DNA of 64,000 nt from Tetramitus jugosus (lineage: Eukaryota; Protista; Heterolobosea), in the NCBI GenBank assembly GCA_937625935.1, contig OW569345.1, forward strand, positions 558,001 to 622,000, written 5' to 3'. The notes below the pieces were generated by a model. The model saw nothing but the letters and a program-made list of their open reading frames with translations, did not search any database and was not told the DNA's origin. Of this stretch, positions 23,578 to 64,000 are shown piece after piece (position 1 is the first letter of the stretch; each line of letters opens with the position of its first letter). The position numbers and the translations under genes are program-made.

Positions 23578-24516
<939 letters not shown>

Positions 24517-24823
24517 TTAAGTTTCTTTTTACAGAGGGTTCTTAGTGTTGTTGTTGGTTTGTTGTTGTTGTTTTTAACTAACGTCCAGTTCTGTTGGGGT
24601 CGCTTTTATAGCTTCTGTTGGGTCCCTCAAAATATGCGGAATCTGAGCTTTAGGAACTTCATTGAGCAATCATGCCAATAATAGCTCAAGACTTTTCCTA
24701 TTTATCCGAGCAGACACTTTCTTGAAAGACGTTATCGGTTCCTTGTTTTGCTCGAATTCTACTCTTCCCTGGAACCAAAACTCAAATTCTCCTCCTACAT
24801 ACACACAAAAAGGCAATCAGAAA

Positions 24824-33773: not shown

Positions 33774-34165
33774 GTGATCAAGCCTTGTTGATTAGAAATT
33801 ATACTGAAACATCAACTGGTGCTCAAATCGCACCCAAGCGTTTATGGAGTATTCCAGGACCCCAAGATAAGAAGTGAAAACCTCCTCCATTCTCCTTTGT
33901 CTCTGAAAGACTCTATTCAAAGACAAAATGGAAAGGATAAAAGAGAAACAAACTCGATCAGAATCAAATTTACAACCATCAAGGATTGACTGGCGGTTTC
34001 TGACCAATTCTTTGGCTCAAACGAAAAATAAAAAAATAACTTTTTAAGGTTTTTCTGCGGTCGCAATGGATGACTATATTGTTGTTAAGTTAGATGCCGA
34101 AGGCATCGAATACCACATTTTAATTGTCCACAAAAAATACATACGCCTTTAACAAATCATTCTGT

Positions 34166-34647
34166 TTATTGATTAACAACTCTCCACCCTCCAGGTACCA
34201 ATTCAAATTGTTCCCATGAACATGCCAAGTAGAATCCCTTCCACTTCACATAACCATACCAAGAACCATTTTGATACTTCCAATCCAGAACATCATCAAT
34301 TTGATAGAACTGTCCATTGGAGGTGTAGTTTTGGTGAATGTGACAGTACTGGGTTCCACGTTTCCTTTGCAATTTGCACGGTAAGCCTGACTTGCAAACG
34401 GCCAAACAGTATGAGTACAAATTGTCCATATAAGACCTTATTGTTGATAGATTATTGACCATCGAAGATCGAAAATCCCGACACGTCAATACCAAATTCA
34501 ACATCTTCTACACCAAGGAACGAACCAACTAGATACACAAATAAATCAATATGTATATCGGTTATCGGTTCTTACTTTTCTTTTGACTCCAAACTTTACC
34601 AATTGTTGGTTATGTCTTCTTTTGGCGCCTTTTCCTTGTTTTCCCAT
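34166..34647 (-). pseudogene. Cargo F-box/Zn-finger/chromodomain ORF, frameshifted in copy 1
   Basis: Keeps the ATG (MGKQGKGAKRR) but has small indels near 34500 and 34560 relative to copy 2. Confidence 0.7.
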
Positions 34648-34661
34648 TTGTTCATTGATTT

Positions 34662-34926
34662 TTTTCATCAAAAAAACTTGCAAAAAACAGAAAACAAACA
34701 CTCTGAAGGACATCGTGAGAGCGAGTGACCTGATGATGAGTATGAGTTTTCTGACGTTTGTCAAATTCTGTCCTATTGATACCATTAGAGATTTTTCATC
34801 AAAAAAAACTTGCAAAAAACAGAAAACAAACACTCTGAAGGACATCGTGAGAGCGAGTGACCTGATGATGAGTGTGAGTTTTCTGAAGTTTGTCAAATTC
34901 TGTCCTACTATTGATACCATTAGAGA
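34662..34926 (+). repeat. About 132-bp tandem duplication specific to copy 1
   Basis: Unit TTTTTCATCAAAA...CTCTGAAGGACATCGTGAG...GATACCATTAGAGA occurs twice; copy 2 has a single unit. Confidence 0.9.
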
Positions 34927-34935
34927 GGTGTTGAA

Positions 34936-35561
34936 TTGTCCGATAACTTGAGTATTCAGATCTCATTGATGACACTTGCTCTTCAAACATATCCTGATAA
35001 CACTGACTATGTCAACAAGATTATTAATAACATTGCTAGTCAATTGAATAGCACTGCACTTGCTTCAGATGAAATTGTAGACATGTTGAAGCGATTGTTG
35101 TTGGTGCCACTCGAGTCATACAACAATGTGCTAACAGTTTTGAAGTTGGAGAAGTATGGTGATATTATTCATTCTCTTGGATATGAACAGAGAAAGTTTA
35201 TTGCACTGAGCATTGTGAGATGCGCACTTGACAATGGACACAAGATTTCAACATTTGAACAAGTGAACAAACCGTTTGATTTGATTCGTCCACTGTTGAA
35301 GACCAGACAACATTCTCACCTTCTGACGACTCACCAATAGCTGCAACATTGCTCGAAGATTTCGAAGAAGAACAGAACTTGATTGCCAGATTGGTTCATT
35401 TGTTTGACAATAGCGATTCTGATCAATTGTTTAAAGTTTTGGCCGCAGCCAGAAAGCACTTTGGTCAGAGTGGTGTCAAGAGAATTCAATACACATTGGT
35501 ACCGCTTGTATTCTCCTACTTGAAACTTGCTCAGAGAATCTACAATGCACACTGCAAATAG
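34936..35561 (+). pseudogene. VPS35: Captured VPS35 internal fragment, frameshifted (copy 1)
   Basis: YPDNTDYV...LLLVPLESYNNVLTVLKL...EDFEEEQNLIARLVH...ARKHFGQSGVKRIQYTLVPLVF; 10-nt deletion near 35300 versus copy 2. Confidence 0.85.
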
Positions 35562-35900
35562 ACACCTCTTGTCGACTCTCCATCTTTTTTGATTGATTTG
35601 GTTGTTGTTGTTGCTGATGTTCGTTGTGCGACTTGTGTTTTTCGTTGTTGTTGTCGTGTCAGAGAGAAAGTTTTTCGTTGGTTCAAGATTGGATCGATAG
35701 GTGGAGATATTATAAAAAAATACAATAAATGTTGTATCAGTTTCTTCTAAGCTGCGGAATTGGTGCAGTTGTAACAATTTCCGTTGAGACTGTCTTTACA
35801 ACGGCAACGGCCATCTACCTCGGTTTAAAAAGCGCTGTCTTTTTCGCTGTTTGATTCAACTCACACAACAAATACAACACACAACAAATACAATAACATT

Positions 35901-38028
35901 ATGCCACGAGGCGTGCCTAAGGACGGCAAGAGAAAGAGAAAGAGAGAGACTGTCAAAAAGAATGAATACTCATCACATTACGTGGTCAAGGTCGGTCTGA
36001 AGTCTCTGTTGTTGCATCATCCAACTCTGTTACCAATCATACAGACTCAAGCTCTGGAGATTACAAGGATTGCTCTTCGGCTCACAAGATTTATAAACAT
36101 ATTAGTTTTGAGGCACTTGGAGTCTGACTATCAAATCCCTTTATTAGATCAAGTGTTTCTTCAAAGATTAGGTTCTGTGTTGTTTGGACGCAATTCAAAA
36201 CCAAGAGACAATAACTTAAGTCTCATCAACGAGTCTGTCAACATGGACGATGTAGTAGTCAAACTCAGAAAGATTTATCAGAGTTTTGCCACGTCCATCA
36301 ATTATGTTGCCAGGTCTCTCAATGTCAACATCTCCAACATGCTCAAGTTCACATTGGAACCAAGACTGAGGAAGTATCTGAGGGTCAGAATCAATCAACT
36401 ACACAGTGATTCATCTATCCCAAAGTTAGAACAAAGAAGGGTTGTTGAGTTTATTATCAGAAGGTTGACATTTAGCACTCCAGTCCATGATTTTATCAAA
36501 TTGCCTCCAAAAGAGTTGATAGAGACGATTCCTGTGTTGATCCGAGAGGTTCGAACACTTGTTGGTGCTAAAACTGATGAAGTAATTGATGAATCATTTG
36601 TGAAGAACAACACCAATAACATGCTGAAGTTTTACTGGCATGTTCAACAATTTCTGATCAACAATGATATGAAATCGTTTGCACTACTTCCTTTGTCTCA
36701 TTTCAAGTGCAGGTGTATGGAGATTGGTACAAAGGAATTAGTTGATATGCTTAAACAGAAGAAGAAACAAGGAAGACAAAAGAAGGACGATGAGTCAACT
36801 GAATTGAATTACAATCTCAAGTGTTTGAATGTTGGAACAAAGAAAATTCAGATTGATTCAATCAGAACGGATGGTATCCAGGCCTCTGTTGTCGTCAGAC
36901 ACGAGCTAATTGGAAATCATAAGAATAACAAAGCAAAGGAATCCAAGGACATGAAAGAAGCAAAGAAGAGAAAGAAAGAAGCAAAATTGAATGAAGGTGC
37001 CGAATACTTGATTGGTGTTGATCCTGGTATCGTCACTTTGATGTCTTGTACTGACAGTGATAGTAGAAAGTGGGAGTTCTCCAACAAAACATACAGACAT
37101 CTATCCCATCATTCAAAGAACTCCAAGCGATTGTTGAAATACAAAGCAGAATGGAACGAAATGAATGAGAAGAACTTGGATGAACTCCAAAACTCAATCA
37201 AACAGGCCGGTGTATCAACAAGTGGTCTGTTCCTTGAACACATCAATTCTGTATTGAAAGTCGAGGATGATTTGTTGAATTTTTATTGCACCCCAAAGGT
37301 GAAGAGACTGAATTGGGATAGCTATATAATGAGAGATAAGACGATTGCCAATGTTATGAATGACTTTCGAAAGAGAGCAAATGGAAGAAGCATGTTAATT
37401 GGGATGGGCAATGCTGGTTTTGGTCATTGTTACAAAGGACATGCTCCAACACCAAAAGGGAGCGTCCAGATATTATTTCTTACGCACCCCCTAGGGAGGG
37501 GGTCTGAGAAATTTATTCAATATTTTATTCATAGGGGGTCTCTTGATCCCAATCCTAGTAGGAGAATTAATGTAACGTTCGAATTTACAGGAAAATGTTT
37601 TATTCAAATTTATTCAAAACAGGCAGGGAGGGGGTCAGAGGTGAATATAATATCTGGACGCTCCCAAAGGAAAGCTATTGAAAAAGTTGAATGAGCACTT
37701 CAATGTGAAAATGATCGACGAGTTCATGACAAGTCAGAAATGTCATCATTGCCATTCTCACATGAAGCCAGTCAAGCATAAGAGAATAGACAAGAATGGA
37801 GCGTTGAATGTCTCTGTCGTCCGAGGAGTTAAACAGTGTGCAACCACTAAATGTTTAGTGACTCACAACAGAGACATCAATGCGGCCAAGAACATGCTCC
37901 ATCTACTGAGAACAGAAATGGATGGACAGCCACGTCCCGATGCCTTCAAGAGGAAGAAAAAGGTCGCAAAAGAATTAATCAAAATGGTGGAACACCTCCA
38001 AGGCTCACTCCATCAAGCTGCTATGTAA
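35901..38028 (+). pseudogene. Fanzor1 nuclease disrupted by MITE insertion
   Basis: Collinear with the 638-aa ORF of copy 2; an extra 211 bp shifts the frame between RuvC-I and RuvC-II. Confidence 0.92.
37458..37665. mobile_element. 208-bp MITE with 19-bp perfect TIRs and 3-bp TSD (AAA)
   Basis: GGGAGCGTCCAGATATTAT (37458-37476) and ATAATATCTGGACGCTCCC (37647-37665); the empty site CCAAAAGGAAAG is visible in copy 2. Confidence 0.95.
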
Positions 38029-38136
38029 GTCCCGATTATGTAGGAGCGTTAAGGTGTCTTATCGGGAAATCATAATTTTTTATTATGGTTTGATCGACAG
38101 TAGACCGCCACCTTAATCGATATGATGAAGCTGGTG
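38029..38136 (+). ncRNA. Putative Fanzor omegaRNA (scaffold plus guide), copy 1
   Basis: Stems 38030-36/38061-67 and 38067-76/38082-91; pseudoknot 38049-56/38109-16; conservation with copy 2 ends sharply after TTAA. Confidence 0.75.
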
Positions 38137-55142: not shown

Positions 55143-57172
55143 ATGAATGCTTTCATTGACACTACAACCAACATGACTGTGCTGTTGGTGAACAACAACA
55201 ATGGAACAGATCCTGGTCAACATGAAGTTCCAAGATGGCAGATCACACTACCAATCGTGGTCATCTTTTTCCTATTGTCCATCTCGTTTATGCTCACAAA
55301 GCTCATCCACAAAATCAAGTACTTGAACTTTATTCCGGAGAGTGGTATTGTGATGGCGTTTGGTCTCATTCTAGGCTTCTTTAATTATTTGTCTGGTGGA
55401 AAGTACAATCGATTGCTCATGTTCGATACAGCTCTCTTTGATTTTGTCATTATTCCTGCGATTATATTCGAGAGTGGTTATTCGTTGAAGAAGAAGGGAT
55501 TGTTTAAGAATGTCATTTCGATTGCAATGTTTGCTGTGGTGGGAACGTTGATTAGCACGCTGTTTGTTGGATTTTCATTGTTTTTGTTTGCCAAATTTGC
55601 AGGAATCCAAAGCATTGGTAAGTAGTAGTTGTTTTTCGTGTGTGTGTATTTTGATTGTAAATGGCGTGTTTGGAACACACGTGTTTATCTGGAATTGGTG
55701 TTCTAACGTACGTTGTTGTTGTTGTTGTTGTTGTTGTGGTGTTAGATACGACCAATCCTGCTGAAGCTCTCGTGTTTGGTGCTTTGATTAGTGCGACTGA
55801 TCCTGTGGCTACATTGGCCCTGTTGGGAGATGTTTTCAAGGTGAAGGAGAGTACTGACGTTCCACTAATTTACAATTTAATTTTTGGAGAGTCAGTTGTG
55901 AATGATGCAGTCAGTATCGTGCTGTTTCGTATCTTGTTAAAGTTTGTGGATCAACCAAAATTTACTGCTGGTAGTTTCTTTGCCATTATTGGTAGCTTCA
56001 TTTATGTGAATATTGGATCTGTCATTATTGGAGTTGCTGTTGGATTGTTTGCTGCCATGTTTTTCAAATTTGTGAGCTTCAAGTACAATACTGCTGTCGA
56101 GATTATCTTGTTGGCTATGATGGCACTATCCAGTTACTTGCTTGCTGAGGCTGCACAATTGTCAGGTATCATGAGTTTGTTTGCCTGTGGTATTGTGTGC
56201 GGTCGCTTTGCATGGTACAATTTGTCAGCTTACTCTCGCTTGACAAGTCCCCAGACGTTCAAAGTGCTTGCTACTGCTGCAGATTCCTATGTTTTCCTCT
56301 TCCTTGGTATCAGTGCATTCAGTTTCCCTGATAGAAGTAGCTGGAGAGTTGGATTTATTGGAATTGGTATTTTGTTGATCTTGGTAGGTCGAGCCCTAAA
56401 TATCATCCCTATTACATTGATCACGAACATTTGGCGAAAGAGAAAAATTAATTGGAGAGAGTGCATCTTCCAATGGTTCAGTGGTCTCCGAGGAGCCATT
56501 GCCTTTGCCCTATCTTTGCATTGTTTAGAGCTCGATACACCAAATGCCAAAGCCATTGTGACCACGACACTATTTATTGTTTTGTTTAGTGTTTGGGTAT
56601 TTGGCGGATTGACACTGCCTATTCTCAAGCTATTGAGACTCGACAAGTCAACAGAAGTGAAGGAAAAGGATCAGAGTAATGCGCATTTGCCTGGTGCCAT
56701 TTTGGTGATCAACAAAGCCAGTGTCAAAGCCGAGAACATTGATGATCCTGGTGACGAGGTACTAATCAGCAGTGATAGCACAAAGAAAAAGAAGAGTGAT
56801 TTCATGAGACGGATTGACGAGAAAATTCTGCGACCACTCTTGAGAAAGCGTCATGATCAGACTTCTCCTCATCTGAGAGATCTTCTCTTGGGTGGTAGTA
56901 TCCCATCCACTTTGAAGATTGAAGAAATTGAGCGGATAGAGTACGAGGCGTTGTACTCAAGTATGAAGCCAGCTCAAAGGATCTCTGTCAGAGATTTGTT
57001 TACTAACTTCTACAACAATACCCACGCAGGAAGTGAATACGGCGTACTGGACAATGATACTGTGGACTTGATGAGCTCTGTGGAAGAGTCAGCACAACTA
57101 CAGGAGAATGAAACACTATCTCTTTATCAACAAGGTGAATCCACTGAAAATCCATACTACAGCTCTGTTTGA
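55143..57172 (+). CDS. Na+/H+ exchanger (CPA1/NHE); intron 55618-55745
   Basis: IPES, PAIIFESGY, ISATDPVA, FGESVVNDAVSIVL, SGLRGAIAFAL. Confidence 0.95.
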
Positions 57173-57309
57173 TGATATTCAATGAATAAACATTCGACAT
57201 TCAACGACTTATCCTTCGTTTCCTACCTTGGTGGTGTGGCGGCCTTTTTTCTGTTTCGCTTGGCCAACTAACGACATCAATCAAAATGTTTTCCTTTTTC
57301 CGTCGTTGG

Positions 57310-57417
57310 TACGAGACGTTGATATGTCCTTAAGGTGGCGGTCACTGTCGATCAAACCATAATAAAAAAATTATGATTTCCCGATAAGACACCTTAACGC
57401 TCCTACATAATCGGGAC
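57310..57417 (-). ncRNA. Putative Fanzor omegaRNA (scaffold plus guide), copy 2
   Basis: Same scaffold as copy 1 apart from two 1-nt indels, ending CACCTTAA at 57330, followed by different sequence GGACATATCAACGTCTCGTA. Confidence 0.75.
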
Positions 57418-59334
57418 TTACATAGCAGCTTGATGGAGTGAGCCTTGGAGGTGTTCCACCATTTTGATTAATTCTTTTGCGACCTTTTTCTTCCTCTTGA
57501 AGGCATCGGGACGTGACTGTCCATCCATTTCTGTTCTCAGTAGATGGAGCATGTTCTTGGCCGCATTGATGTCTCTGTTGTGAGTCACTAAACATTTAGT
57601 GGTTGCACACTGTTTAACTCCTCGGACGACAGAGACATTCAACGTTCCTTTCTTGTCTATTCTCTTATGCTTGACTGGCTTCATGTGAGAATGGCAATGA
57701 TGACATTTCTGACTTGTCATGAACTCGTCGATCATTTTCACATTGAAGTGCTCATTCAACTTTTTCAATAGCTTTCCTTTTGGTGTTGGAGCATGTCCTT
57801 TGTAACAATGACCAAAACCAGCATTGCCCATCCCAATTAACATGCTTCTTCCATTTGCTCTCTTTCGAAAGTCATTCATAACATTGGCAATCGTCTTATC
57901 TCTCATAATATAGCTATCCCAATTCAGTCTCTTCACCTTTGGGGTGCAATAAAAATTCAACAAATCGTCCTCGACTTTCAATACAGAATTGATGTGTTCA
58001 AGGAACAGACCACTTGTTGTAACACCGGCCTGCTTGATTGAGTTTTGGAGTTCACCCAAGTTCTTCCCATTCATTTCGTTCCATTCTGCTTTGTATTTCA
58101 ACAATCGCTTGGAGTTCTTTGAATGATGGGATAGATGTCGGTATGTTTTGTTGGAGAACTCCCACTTTCTACTATCACTGTCGGTGCAAGACATCAAAGT
58201 GACGATACCAGGATCAACACCAATCAAGTATTCGGCACCTTCATTCAATTTTGCTTCTTTCTTTCTCTTCTTTGCTTCTTTCATGTCCTTGGTTTCCTTT
58301 GCTTTGTTATTCTTATGATTTCCAGTTAGCTCGTGTCTGACAACAACAGAGGCCTGGATACCATCCGTTCTGATTGAATCAATCTGAATTTTCTTTGTTC
58401 CAACATTCAAACACTTGAGATTGTAATTCAATTCAGTTGACTCATCGCCCTTCTTTTGTCTTCCTTGTTTCTTCTTCTGTTTAAGCATATCAACTAATTC
58501 CTTTGTGCCAATCTCCATACACCTGCACTTGAAATGAGACAAAGGAAGTAGTGTAAACGATTTCATATCATTGTTGATCAGAAATTGTTGAACATGCCAG
58601 TAAAACTTCAACATGTTATTGGTGTTGTTGTTCACAAATGTTTCATCAATTACTTCGTCAGTTTTAGCACCAACAAGTGTTCGAACCTCTCGGATCAACA
58701 CAGGAATCGTCTCTATCAACTCTTTTGGAGGCAATTTGATAAAATCATGGACTGGAGTGACGAATGTCAACCTTCTGATAATATACTCAACAACCCTTCT
58801 TTGTTCTGACTTTGGGATAGATGAGTCACTGTGTAGTTGATTCATTCTGACCCTCAAATACTTCCTCAGTCTTGGTTCCAATGTGAACTTGAGCATGTTG
58901 GAGATGTTGACATTGAGAGACCTGGCAACATAATTAATGGACGTGGCAAAACTCTGATAAATCTTTCTGAGTTTGACTACTACATCGTCCATGTTGACAG
59001 ACTCGTTGATGAGACTTAAGTTATTGTCTCTTGGTTTTGAATTGCGTCCAAACAACACAGAACCTAATCTTTGAAGAAACACTTGATCTAATAAAGGGAT
59101 TTGATAGTCAGACTCCAAGTGCCTCAAAACTAATATGTTTATAAATCTTGTGAGTCGAAGAGCAATCCTTGTAATCTCCAGAGCTTGAGTCTGTATGATT
59201 GGTAACAGAGTTGGATGATGCAACAACAGAGACTTCAGACCGACCTTGACCACGTAATGTGATGAGTATTCATTCTTTTTGACAGTCTCTCTCTTTCTCT
59301 TTCTCTTGCCGTCCTTAGGCACGCCTCGTGGCAT
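57418..59334 (-). CDS. Fanzor1 (eukaryotic TnpB-like RNA-guided endonuclease), 638 aa, intact
   Basis: RuvC-I IGVDPG, RuvC-II IDEFMTSQKC, Zn ribbon CHHC...CATTKC, RuvC-III NRDINAAKNM; N-terminal VVKVGL and NLS-like KRKRKR. Confidence 0.93.
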   Translation of the reverse strand: MPRGVPKDGKRKRKRETVKKNEYSSHYVVKVGLKSLLLHHPTLLPIIQTQALEITRIALRLTRFINILVLRHLESDYQIPLLDQVFLQRLGSVLFGRNSKPRDNNLSLINESVNMDDVVVKLRKIYQSFATSINYVARSLNVNISNMLKFTLEPRLRKYLRVRMNQLHSDSSIPKSEQRRVVEYIIRRLTFVTPVHDFIKLPPKELIETIPVLIREVRTLVGAKTDEVIDETFVNNNTNNMLKFYWHVQQFLINNDMKSFTLLPLSHFKCRCMEIGTKELVDMLKQKKKQGRQKKGDESTELNYNLKCLNVGTKKIQIDSIRTDGIQASVVVRHELTGNHKNNKAKETKDMKEAKKRKKEAKLNEGAEYLIGVDPGIVTLMSCTDSDSRKWEFSNKTYRHLSHHSKNSKRLLKYKAEWNEMNGKNLGELQNSIKQAGVTTSGLFLEHINSVLKVEDDLLNFYCTPKVKRLNWDSYIMRDKTIANVMNDFRKRANGRSMLIGMGNAGFGHCYKGHAPTPKGKLLKKLNEHFNVKMIDEFMTSQKCHHCHSHMKPVKHKRIDKKGTLNVSVVRGVKQCATTKCLVTHNRDINAAKNMLHLLRTEMDGQSRPDAFKRKKKVAKELIKMVEHLQGSLHQAAM

Positions 59335-59673
59335 AATGTTATTGTATTTGTTGTGTGTTGTATTTGTTGTGTGAGTTGAATCAAACAGCGAAAAAGACAG
59401 CGCTTTTTAAACCGAGGTAGATGGCCGTTGCCGTTGTAAAGACAGTCTCAACGGAAATTGTTACAACTGCACCAATTCCGCAGCTTAGAAGAAACTGATA
59501 CAACATTTATTGTATTTTTTTATAATATCTCCACCTATCGATCCAATCTTGAACCAACGAAAAACTTTCTCTCTGACACGACAACAACAACGAAAAACAC
59601 AAGTCGCACAACGAACATCAGCAACAACAACAACCAAATCAATCAAAAAAGATGGAGAGTCGACAAGAGGTGT

Positions 59674-60309
59674 CTATTTGCAGTGTGCATTGTAGATTCT
59701 CTGAGCAAGTTTCAAGTAGGAGAATACAAGCGGTACCAATGTGTATTGAATTCTCTTGACACCACTCTGACCAAAGTGCTTTCTGGCTGCGGCCAAAACT
59801 TTAAACAATTGATCAGAATCGCTATTGTCAAACAAATGAACCAATCTGGCAATCAAGTTCTGTTCTTCTTCGAAATCTTCGAGCAATGTTGCAGCTATTG
59901 GTGAGTCGTCAGAAGGTGAGAATGTTGTTTGGTCTTCCTCATCCTTCAACAGTGGACGAATCAAATCAAACAGTTTGTTCACTTGTTCAAATGTTGAAAT
60001 CTTGTGTCCATTGTCAAGTGCGCATCTCACAATGCTCAGTGCAATAAACCTTCTCTGTTCATATCCAAGAGAATGAATAATATCACCATACTTCTCCAAC
60101 TTCAAAACTGTTAGCACATTGTTGTATGACTCGAGTGGCACCAACAACAATCGCTTCAACATGTCTACAATTTCATCTGAAGCAAGTGCAGTGCTATTCA
60201 ATTGACTAGCAATGTTATTAATAATCTTGTTGACATAGTCAGTGTTATCAGGATATGTTTGAAGAGCAAGTGTCATCAATGAGATCTGAATACTCAAGTT
60301 ATCGGACAA
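59674..60309 (-). pseudogene. VPS35: Captured VPS35 internal fragment (open over 211 codons, lacks both termini)
   Basis: Resembles the central alpha-solenoid of Vps35: DFEEEQNLIARLVHLF, ARKHFGQSGVKRIQYTLVPLVF. Confidence 0.85.
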
Positions 60310-60445
60310 TTCAACACCTCTCTAATGGTATCAATAGTAGGACAGAATTTGACAAACTTCAGAAAACTCACACTCATCATCAGGTCACTCGCATTCACGA
60401 TGTCCTTCAGAGTGTTTGTTTTCTGTTTTTTGCAAGTTTTTTTGA

Positions 60446-60925
60446 AAACAAGGAAAAGGCGCCAAAAGAAGACATAACCAACACCAACAATTGGTAAAGT
60501 TTGGAGTCAAAAGAAAAGTAAGAATAACCGATATACATATTGATTTATTTGTGTATCTAGTTGGTTCGTTCCTTGGTGTAGAAGATGTGTTGAATTTGGT
60601 ATTGACGTGTCGGGATTTTCGATCTTCGATGGTCAATAATCTATCAACAATAAGGTCTTATATGGACAATTTGTACTCATACTGTTTGGCCGTTTGCAAG
60701 TCAGGCTTACCGTGCAAATTGCAAAGGAAACGTGGAACCCAGTACTGTCACATTCACCAAAACTACACCTCCAATGGACAGTTCTATCAAATTGATGATG
60801 TTCTGGATTGGAAGTATCAAAATGGTTCTTGGTATGGTTATGTGAAGTGGAAGGGATTCTACTTGGCATGTTCATGGGAACAATTTGAATTGGTACCTGG
60901 AGGGTGGAGAGTTGTTAATCAATAA
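60446..60925 (+). CDS. Cargo ORF: F-box-like, CCCH-type Zn finger and chromodomain (start ATG deleted in this copy)
   Basis: IHIDLFVYLVGSFLGVEDVLNLVLTCRDF; CLAVCKSGLPC...YCHIH; YQIDDVLDW...YVKWKGF...SWE. Confidence 0.7.
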   Translation, partial: KQGKGAKRRHNQHQQLVKFGVKRKVRITDIHIDLFVYLVGSFLGVEDVLNLVLTCRDFRSSMVNNLSTIRSYMDNLYSYCLAVCKSGLPCKLQRKRGTQYCHIHQNYTSNGQFYQIDDVLDWKYQNGSWYGYVKWKGFYLACSWEQFELVPGGWRVVNQ

Positions 60926-61252
60926 ACAGAATGATTTGTTAAAGGCGTATGTATTTTTTGTTTTGTGTATTACAATTTGTAAGAATGTTTTTGTAAAGTT
61001 AAACTATTGTCTCGTATATGTTTTTTTAATTGTAGTGTGAAGAATATACATGATGAGAAGACGAGGGAGGCAAAGATTCAGATGATCAAGTTGTATGGCT
61101 TTAGTGGGGAATTCCGGAGCGTTTGAATAGATTGCACGTGCAGCGGATATAAATCCTTCTTTTGCAGCTTCAAGATATGTCCTTAAAAAACACAAACACC
61201 AAGGGGAAGTTGAGAACAACAGCAACAACAACACCGAGGAAGAAACAAACTG

Positions 61253-64000
61253 ATGCGAGGTCTTCACGAAACAGAGGACATCACAGAGATATCCCCTTCT
61301 GAATCCATCAACAATGAAATGTGCACGGGCACATCACCTTCGCAGTCTCCTGTGACAATTTGTGACAACAACGACAAATCGAGCGAGACGGCTCAACAAA
61401 CACCTGAACAACAACAACCACAACAAGAACCTGTAATTCATCATCACCAACAACAACAACAAGAAACACCACCTTCACCTTTCCCAGCACCTTCTGCACT
61501 ACTCATGATTCCTTGGAGCATTGAAGAAACTGCTGTGGTCGTTACACCGGAAATATTTGCGCGCGCGGGACAATTACCGAAAGGACCACCGACGGAGATG
61601 GAGGAGCTCCGCCACACAACAAACAACAACACAGCCAAAATCGACATCTCCAACACCAACACCACAACAAGCATCAACACAGGCAAAATCGACACCGCGA
61701 CCAACATCAACATTCACCACACCAATAATAGCAATAATAATATTGTTCTTATTGATACTATTTATAGTAATAGCGGCAGTAGTGAACCACTCAACAGAGA
61801 GGAAGAAGAAGAAGAAAAACATTGTGTCATCATTTCTGACATTCAAATGTTTTCCCTTCCACCACTGCATCATGATGAAAAAACCCAGACTACTCCAATC
61901 ATAGAAACAATGACAAATAACACTACGAGTAGTACTGTGCCGTACATGATGAAAATGGAGGGTGAAGCTGATTGTTCAGATGATGATGAAGAAGAAGAGG
62001 CACAACAAGAACAGAATCACACTGTCGTCACTGCAACTACTACACCAACAACAACAATAGCAAGTGAGGAAAATGAGAATTTTTGTGACAAAAATGATGA
62101 AAAACAAACAACAACAACTGCAATGGCAGTCGTAGTAGTACCACTGGCAGACAATCATTCAGAAACAGAAACAACAATAGAAACAGAAGAAGAAGCAAAT
62201 GCTGTTCCATTGCTGTCTTTTTCAGTACCTGCAATAGTGTCATCACCATCTTCATCATCTCCACTACTGTTTTCAGAAGCAGAAAAAATTTTGAAAATTC
62301 AAGAAAATGTCATTGCCGAACTCAACTTGGAACAAATTCATGAAGATGATGATGATGATCATAGTGATGTCAGTAATGATAATGATAGTGACAGTGATGA
62401 AACCAGTACGAGTAGTCATAGTGATGCCAACAATACAACAGTCATTGAAAGAACAAGTCATGGGAATCAAAGTTTGAACAACAATGATGAGGAGTCAAAT
62501 AATAATGATGATGACGCTTCCACTGTATCTTCTCTTTTTGACAGTGACTCTGACAGTGACACCGATTTCGGCGAAAATATCGGAGAAAAAAAGCCAAATG
62601 CAGCAACAAATCAGAACAGGAATGAAAACAAGGATAACAAGACAACGACGTCGTTAGATGAGGAGCAATTTGTGCAAGTGGTCAATCACAAGAATCCACT
62701 CATTTCATCAGTGATCAAAATTCCAAAACTTCACTTGGGAGACATCATTGAAGAAACGATTCAAATTCTCAATAGCAAAGACACGATTGAAACCACCGTT
62801 TACACGGATGGTAGTAGCAGCAATCTGAGCAATTTGAGTAATAGAAGCAATCGAAGCAATGGTAGTCGTCGTAGCTCGATCGTCTTACAGAATAGCAGTA
62901 CGAGAGAAATGGCTTCACCATCGCCCTTTTCATTGCCTTCGTTGGAACGAATGTACAACAAGGAAATTTCGGCGTCGTCGACGTCATATCCTCATTACTA
63001 TCATTCGTCGACGGGCACGACAACGACAACTGCGACTGGAGCATTGAATTCCTTTCGCAGTGATCGTCCGTCTCTCACTCGAAAGATATTTACGATACCT
63101 GCATCGGTGATTGAGCCGTCATCTTCGTCATCGTCATTGTCGTTGTCATCGTCTTCATTGTTGAGTCATTCTGCTCATCATGACCACGCTGCTGTGACTC
63201 ATAACGATGATAGAGAAGCAGAAGAAGCAGCAGAAGAGGGATCATTGACACCTAGGCCATTATCATCATCCTTTTCTTCTCAGTTCAACAAGGGTTCATT
63301 CTCAATGTCATCATCGTCTTCATCCATGTCGCGGCACTCATCCTCATCGTCCATTTCATCACTATCATCCTCCATGTTTCTGCTGCACGATGATTTGAAC
63401 TCGTTTGATTTTTCGTTGAGTGACAAAACTCCAATGAACAGTGCAAGAACAGATACGAGTCGATGTAACTCTGCAAGGAACAGTGAATCGTTTGTGCATC
63501 CAACGAATTTGTTGAGTACGAGTGGTGGTGCAACGAGTTCGTTTTTGACCAGTGGTAGTTATCAGACACCATCTCTGTTGTCAAAGAAGAGGAGTCATGA
63601 GCGTATACAGAGCTTCCAGGCTCATCACCAATCAAAATCGTTGCCAAGCAGTAACAATACTTTGGCTACTGTTGGCAGTGCAATTATACAAGAGACAACT
63701 CCTGCCGCTACTAGTAAGGGTAAGGACTTGAGAAATGCGACGTACCAAGGAAACCACGATTCATTCACCGTGTCAGATTTGCGAATACGACCAAAAACAG
63801 TGAGTTATATGAACAATGATCCTTCTCTGCCTTCCATTGATTCACACAGTGCTCGCAAGAGTCTCTATTCTTCATACAAGATGAGCACCAATCATAATAA
63901 GCAGATGAGCGGTAATGTAGCTGTCAATGGTGATCATCAGCCATCACCCTCCATGTTCAGCATGAATTCTCCACAATTGTCATTGTCCAACAATAGTCGT
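61253..64000 (+). CDS. Long low-complexity (S/T/N/D/E-rich) protein, runs off the window edge
   Basis: Frame starting MRGLHETEDIT at 61253 appears open to the window end; no recognisable domain. Confidence 0.7.
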   Translation, partial: MRGLHETEDITEISPSESINNEMCTGTSPSQSPVTICDNNDKSSETAQQTPEQQQPQQEPVIHHHQQQQQETPPSPFPAPSALLMIPWSIEETAVVVTPEIFARAGQLPKGPPTEMEELRHTTNNNTAKIDISNTNTTTSINTGKIDTATNINIHHTNNSNNNIVLIDTIYSNSGSSEPLNREEEEEEKHCVIISDIQMFSLPPLHHDEKTQTTPIIETMTNNTTSSTVPYMMKMEGEADCSDDDEEEEAQQEQNHTVVTATTTPTTTIASEENENFCDKNDEKQTTTTAMAVVVVPLADNHSETETTIETEEEANAVPLLSFSVPAIVSSPSSSSPLLFSEAEKILKIQENVIAELNLEQIHEDDDDDHSDVSNDNDSDSDETSTSSHSDANNTTVIERTSHGNQSLNNNDEESNNNDDDASTVSSLFDSDSDSDTDFGENIGEKKPNAATNQNRNENKDNKTTTSLDEEQFVQVVNHKNPLISSVIKIPKLHLGDIIEETIQILNSKDTIETTVYTDGSSSNLSNLSNRSNRSNGSRRSSIVLQNSSTREMASPSPFSLPSLERMYNKEISASSTSYPHYYHSSTGTTTTTATGALNSFRSDRPSLTRKIFTIPASVIEPSSSSSSLSLSSSSLLSHSAHHDHAAVTHNDDREAEEAAEEGSLTPRPLSSSFSSQFNKGSFSMSSSSSSMSRHSSSSSISSLSSSMFLLHDDLNSFDFSLSDKTPMNSARTDTSRCNSARNSESFVHPTNLLSTSGGATSSFLTSGSYQTPSLLSKKRSHERIQSFQAHHQSKSLPSSNNTLATVGSAIIQETTPAATSKGKDLRNATYQGNHDSFTVSDLRIRPKTVSYMNNDPSLPSIDSHSARKSLYSSYKMSTNHNKQMSGNVAVNGDHQPSPSMFSMNSPQLSLSNNSR

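Follow-up and report, generated by a model that had tools for sequence, protein, structure and literature searches.

An intact Fanzor1 cassette in a left-truncated element of Tetramitus jugosus, and a recurrent duplication of TTAA plus guide start that may record cleavage of empty sites

The role that Fanzors, RNA-guided nucleases of eukaryotes, play for the transposons that carry them is an open question, and restoration of an element at its empty site has been shown in bacterial systems only. We analysed a Fanzor1-bearing element in the heterolobosean Tetramitus jugosus, in a stretch of 64,000 nucleotides referred to here as the window (assembly GCA_937625935.1, contig OW569345.1, positions 558,001 to 622,000, forward strand). 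An earlier reading of the window (the original prediction) had described positions 57310-61186 as a complete, recently mobile Fanzor1 system in a cargo-carrying element that lacks a transposase. This copy (copy A) and its surroundings comprise the following features, given with strand; ORF denotes open reading frame and TIR terminal inverted repeat.

57315..57329, minus: predicted 15-nt guide, equal to the host right flank and with its initial 9 nt found again at the left junction
57330..57333, unstranded: right-end TTAA target site, with predicted base pairing within the RNA scaffold
57330..57430, minus: predicted omegaRNA scaffold (folding z -3.5 sense, -1.1 antisense)
57334..57347, minus: right TIR, ending in CC and 1 nt short of its length in every other copy
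57418..59334, minus: Fanzor1 ORF, 638 aa, RuvC D374/E537/D588 intact, C4 zinc ribbon
61174..61186, minus: duplicated 13 bp, made up of TTAA and the right flank's first 9 nt, where a left TIR would be expected
61187..61372, plus: left flank of host DNA, holding the 5' part of the interrupted gene; present as cargo in subfamily-1 copies L009, L010 and L016
61214..64000, plus: remainder of the interrupted single-copy host gene, an open frame of at least 929 codons, with probable start ATG 57286 across the insertion

The product of the 638-aa ORF is a Fanzor1 by all sequence and fold tests made. In a Pfam profile search the ORF matches PF07282 (E 1.6e-9), and its sole sequence match in the PDB is SpuFz1 (E 3.9e-12). 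The three RuvC acidic motifs, zinc ribbon and basic patches named in the original prediction could all be located: D374, P375, G376, G503, E537, C544/C547/C576/C581 and R587-D588 are each kept in at least 90% of 112 homologues, the first RuvC motif reading D374-P-G and the third R587-D588 (RD), and the basic patches lie at residues 10-15, 355-359 and 613-617. Six residues separate E537 from C544, the rearranged glutamate position typical of Fanzor; the Fanzor1 motif D-X(125,275)-[TS][TS]-XX-C4-X(5,50)-RD is present, with T540-S541, C544/547/576/581 and R587-D588, and the Fanzor1-specific pair G500/E536 has its counterpart in G503/E537. The original prediction had made its case depend on a RuvC/TnpB fold, and structure prediction (predicted local distance difference test score, pLDDT, 92) recovered that of SpuFz1, with a template modeling (TM) score of 0.70 (E 2e-23). 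TM scores against PpFz1 (0.64) and GtFz1 (0.60) also place the protein nearer Fanzor1 than Fanzor2 (9b0l, 0.22), TnpB (8h1j, 0.24) or Cas12. Judged by its intact motifs and by purifying selection in the family (below), the nuclease is probably active.

SpuFz1, from Spizellomyces punctatus (PDB 8gkh, 9cey), is of similar size, although structural identity to it is 16-18%. Its element, Spu-1, resembles the present one in having one ORF between inverted repeats, no transposase and a two-stem RNA at the right end; it differs in its TA duplication and CATA target-adjacent motif (TAM), where we find a TTAA duplication, GG..CC ends and a mosaic of host cargo.

The genome was searched over 26,350,207 bases in 56 contigs; the assembly represents one of two haplotypes (26.3 Mb, 55 scaffolds plus the mitochondrion; PMC11106597). 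More than 25 copies of the element family were found, 23 right ends of which were read and about 15 more located by position only. This search, with alignment of the flanks, had been proposed as a check on the original prediction, and it bears out the exact scaffold/guide boundary drawn there from a second copy in the window (copy B): all 23 right flanks, those of A, B and 21 more, diverge exactly after CC-TTAA.

Upstream of this boundary, the right end had been described as a structured non-coding segment of about 90 nt. Taken by themselves, the 91 nt that run from the stop codon fold no better than shuffles (z -1.1), whereas the 101 nt from 57430 to 57330 form two stems (z -3.5 against shuffles; antisense z -1.1); the first stem (57399-57429) extends over the stop codon, which makes the structured unit 101 nt long rather than 91. 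The second stem-loop is closed by an invariant internal TTAAGG that pairs with the terminal CCTTAA. Alignment of the right ends gives three compensatory pairs in stem 1, and the overall covariation score of the scaffold is not above that of shuffles, so that support from covariation is modest; an Rfam scan of the right end gave no match. The layout agrees with that of Fanzor1 RNAs of known structure and with published accounts in which the target-site duplication (TSD) forms part of the scaffold, and a structured right end with a variable flank also occurs in relatives of 40-74% protein identity.

The guide length of 15 nt is taken from published Fanzor1 RNAs (PMC10711439, PMC13565253). The TAM, by contrast, cannot be read from the window alone, as had been claimed; TTAA, perhaps T-TTAA, is predicted from 19 left flanks and from the behaviour of published Fanzor1s. 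A T precedes TTAA in 13 of these flanks (p 0.003), which may extend the TAM or reflect a preference of the transposase. Similar TTAA-like motifs are known from GtFz1 (TAM TTAAN) and from ascovirus and granulovirus Fanzor1 elements (TTAN duplication, 13-bp TIR), where TSD and TIR are likewise folded into the RNA scaffold; GtFz1 differs in lacking inverted repeats and in its TM score of 0.60.

Sixteen fetched Fanzor ORFs are full length, and all catalytic motifs are intact in 15 of them. Pairwise ratios of nonsynonymous to synonymous divergence (dN/dS) among the 16 are mostly 0.13-0.33, the overall value being ~0.17, and the family's ORFs are mosaics of diverged variants. Certain pairs of copies are near-identical (dS 0 to 0.01); together with a polymorphic empty allele (below), they uphold the proposed recent mobility for the family, but not for the window copy, which has no left TIR. 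One diverged variant (L023, L026 and L028, ~77% DNA identity) is cut off at codon 480 in all three copies.

Complete copies are flanked on each side by TTAA and bounded by inverted repeats of 12-15 bp that start with GG and end with CC. Three left-end types and two right-end types occur among them, with GG..CC in all three end types. Besides Fanzor, copy A encodes no more than a Vps35 fragment and an F-box-like piece, and neither it nor any other fetched copy of the family holds a transposase, as the original prediction had stated for copy A. A PF20700 profile search for a transposase returned no match, though its control also failed. No autonomous relative was found in metagenome or viral contigs; the 26 matches to a 16-nt TIR pattern in viral contigs are single and were taken as chance. 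Fifteen matches to piggyBac-type transposase (PF13843) are present in the genome, on C7, C18, C30, C34, C39 and others, several of them within long open frames, and all lie outside these TIR pairs. Since the fetched copies hold no transposase and the piggyBac matches lie elsewhere, the carrier was assigned from its ends alone. A TTAA target duplication combined with 5'-RR..YY-3' termini separates Kolobok ends from those of piggyBac (PMC9587614); all complete copies have the TTAA duplication and their GG..CC ends are of the RR..YY form, while a piggyBac element would have other termini with a piggyBac transposase between them. The short TIRs also resemble those of Kolobok, although no Kolobok transposase was found in the material searched here. 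The carrier is thus likely of Kolobok type, which would be new for Fanzor: Kolobok is reported from Naegleria (PMC9587614), and a 2026 review of Fanzor carriers lists piggyBac among them but not Kolobok. The family would then be a non-autonomous cut-and-paste transposon, moved in trans by a putative DDE transposase. A 2.2-kb element (G000:C32:2808-4989) with type-2-like TTAA/GG..CC ends has no Fanzor match and is either a candidate partner or an unrelated non-autonomous element.

Metagenome relatives with 57-74% protein identity retain these ends. A Fanzor1 that is only 40% identical (L062:2080-2107 and L063) bears the subfamily 2 right-end type of the T. jugosus genome, which indicates that ends have been swapped between Fanzor lineages. 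Two further relatives of ~61% protein identity (L031:2375-4556 and L032:1725-3897) have another right end, which is shorter and lacks both TTAA and the GG..CC repeat; some close Fanzor1 relatives therefore ride another carrier.

Copy A is not itself such a complete transposon. It has no left TIR, and its right TIR carries a 1-nt deletion absent from every other copy, so that the pair of TIRs expected of a mobile element is not present. It is an immobile copy of the element, truncated on the left, in which the Fanzor1 cassette is intact, and the predicted completeness holds for the nuclease cassette but not for the element. Contigs from two independent studies, one of groundwater and one of soil, join 57317 to 61177 and carry window-type letters in the left flank; a pattern search for the empty-allele sequence gave no match in metagenome contigs. 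Because such an empty allele exists, 61186 is a true insertion boundary, though not a transposon end as had been proposed. The possibility that 61186 is a mere internal position in the cargo was dropped once the empty-allele joint was found at this spot. An empty-site spacer of 2 or 5 letters would give a single host frame leading from the ATG at 57286 into the 929-codon frame, so a single-copy host gene was probably interrupted by the insertion, close to where the gene begins. The frame at 61214-64000 has no Pfam match.

At its left junction, copy A repeats TTAA and the start of its own right flank, over 9 nt of flank. The same arrangement is found in L024 (9 nt), where the junction shows 3 nt of microhomology ~40 nt inside the left end, and in L012 (12 nt). 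Such a duplication is present in 3 of the 6 left-end-less copies that have a right end, compared with none of 17 complete copies (p 0.011), and the longest match among 754 mismatched pairings is 6 nt. No mirror-image duplication was seen in the 3 right-end-less copies. This recurrent duplication of the TAM plus guide start at left junctions is new here. L012, on C3, directly follows an open frame with a PH domain (L012:2-535); its two flanks are not joined in frame, as at the window locus.

We attribute the duplications, with a probability of roughly 0.55, to Fanzor cleavage of the empty site followed by one-ended repair that copied the element back in. By analogy with published Fanzor1s, the RNA of each copy would start within the last codons of the ORF, continue across the right end and TTAA, and finish ~15 nt into the flank; its target would be TTAA plus the copy's own right flank, that is, its own empty site. 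Starting from an element already resident at this TTAA, the nuclease would cut the empty allele, on the homologue or after excision, ~14-21 nt beyond TTAA, the distance from the TAM of published Fanzor1 cut sites (PMC10432273). The released distal end would copy the element from its right end by way of flank homology, and the TAM-side end, trimmed to 9 nt beyond TTAA, would be joined inside the element rather than at the left TIR. The product would be a left-end-less copy in which TTAA and the guide start are duplicated. The duplicated lengths of 9-12 nt fall in a narrow range just short of the published cut positions. Cas12a lets the distal end go and keeps the end on the side of the protospacer-adjacent motif, which undergoes longer deletions (PMC11998249).

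Several points weigh against this interpretation. The duplications amount to three events in a single genome, and the other three of the six left-end-less copies show none: B and L003, where the junction has a TTAA with at most 1 matching nt, and L029, which has none. The contrast in direction, 3/6 against 0/3, is not significant (p 0.46). The joint in the empty allele, for which the intervening letters are not reported, differs from the exact joint expected. Retention of the TAM-side end by Fanzor is carried over from Cas12a, and guide RNA, TAM and cleavage are all predicted for this family.

The main rival, which we consider doubtful, leaves Fanzor uninvolved: a transposase would have joined the right end only at TTAA, and the host strand, extended 13-16 nt by strand displacement, would have been ligated to a trimmed left end. 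Aberrant one-ended joining occurs with DDE integrases. The route predicts the identical structure and makes a prior occupant of the site unnecessary, and two of the junctions do lie close to the left end. However, it would be expected at either end, and the lack of a mirror case among the three right-end-less copies speaks weakly against it; nor does it predict the narrow range of lengths near the Fanzor cut positions. It is very unlikely that an RNA of the element was instead copied by target-primed reverse transcription, with a retrotransposon enzyme acting in trans to leave 5'-truncated copies and 13-16 bp target duplications. Insertions of retrotransposons without long terminal repeats typically show variable left ends and longer duplications, but the copies here have no poly(A) tail, end at the 3' side in the exact TIR plus TTAA, and hold inserts of 2.6-4 kb, L024 extending to 40 nt from the left end. 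For the window locus only, a subfamily-1 element bearing this host fragment might have recombined into the donor gene through its cargo and lost its left end. Indels aside, the subfamily-1 cargo is ~98% like the left flank, and it extends across the junction; still, we hold this to be highly improbable, as the end of the cargo would have to fall 9 nt beyond precisely the TTAA that is joined to the right end, L012 and L024 would stay unexplained, and the flank has letters of the host type found in the empty allele. That the 13-bp repeat arose by chance and an ordinary deletion took the left end is refuted, despite the frequent internal deletions in the family, by the match lengths (9, 9 and 12 nt, where the null gave 6 at most) and by the position of the empty-allele joint at this spot.

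If cleavage by Fanzor did produce the duplications, they may be in vivo footprints of empty-site cutting with one-ended homing, and the first genomic evidence of it from a eukaryote; repeated repair and re-capping would build the mosaic cargo, and the long duplications of the Fanzor1 family MCi-2 may share the process. We advance this wider view tentatively, at somewhat less than even odds. MCi-2, from Mucor circinelloides (PMC3627910), is the closest described anomaly: its 11-12 bp duplications combine a fixed motif with variable bases, and it has no TIR, fuzzy and variable 5' ends and constant 3' ends. There the family was left unclassified and the duplications unexplained, whereas here complete copies with TIRs and plain TTAA exist alongside, so that the long duplication can be interpreted as derived, a product of repair. 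The proposal parallels restorative homing by the TnpB of IS605 and IS607, in which the guide equals the right flank, the TAM equals the insertion motif and the target is the empty site; it differs in the eukaryotic host, the DDE-type ends and the imperfect product, the only one seen here. According to the 2026 review, experimental demonstration of homing is confined to TnpB and IscB of bacteria. With its cultivable host, 15 catalytically intact ORFs, predicted guides, empty alleles that are polymorphic, and a scar that can be counted and carries a clear directional prediction, the family opens the question of Fanzor's role to direct test. Further gains are a carrier superfamily that is likely new (Kolobok-type ends), a route for host-gene capture, and a nuclease of 638 aa whose predicted motif is TTAA.

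The cargo foreseen in the original prediction was identified between the Fanzor ORF and the left junction, a region that also holds an upstream core and a left-end remnant:

59335..59498, minus: upstream core common to all subfamilies, putative promoter and 5' untranslated region; shared boundary at query 1803
59684..60361, minus: fragment from the interior of host Vps35, with 98% identity to the complete gene on contig C22
60400..60445, minus: remnant of an older left-end subterminal sequence, resembling the left ends of L028 and L030
60446..60927, plus: F-box-like / CCCH piece (ORF 60491-60925), from weak Pfam and Atlas leads
60928..61100, unstranded: piece from a single-copy C21 locus, 250 nt deleted in copy A; its end lies 11 nt past TTAA
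61098..61173, unstranded: piece from a single-copy C13 locus

A promoter scan gave no match, and no donor locus for the F-box-like piece was found in the genome. A fusion of Vps35 to Fanzor was ruled out by stops between them in every copy. In subfamily-1 copies, the left flank 61372-61187 and the duplication junction follow behind a true left end; because they carry both, these copies most simply derive from an A-like copy. In the proposed sequence of events, a later template switch would have set a new left end before the left flank of this locus and thereby founded subfamily 1, with host DNA as cargo. A TTAA precedes two further cargo junctions by 8-12 nt (background per junction 1.3%; post hoc p ~0.01), which suggests repeated repair cycles, but most junctions show no such spacing.

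The second copy in the window also has no left TIR:

34130..38116, plus: copy B, right end intact, Fanzor ORF interrupted at 37455-37665

The interrupting sequence is a miniature inverted-repeat transposable element of 211 nt with long TIRs, which has at least 47 matches in the genome, many of them close to contig ends. The cargo of copy B holds a 132-nt tandem duplication (window 34670-34907) that is common to several other copies and missing from copy A. Elsewhere in the window, a Na+/H+ exchanger gene (55661-57172) stops 157 nt from the right end of copy A, and four tandem 228-nt (76-codon) units at 23585-24568, in the ORF 23578-24495, have a polyubiquitin-like period.

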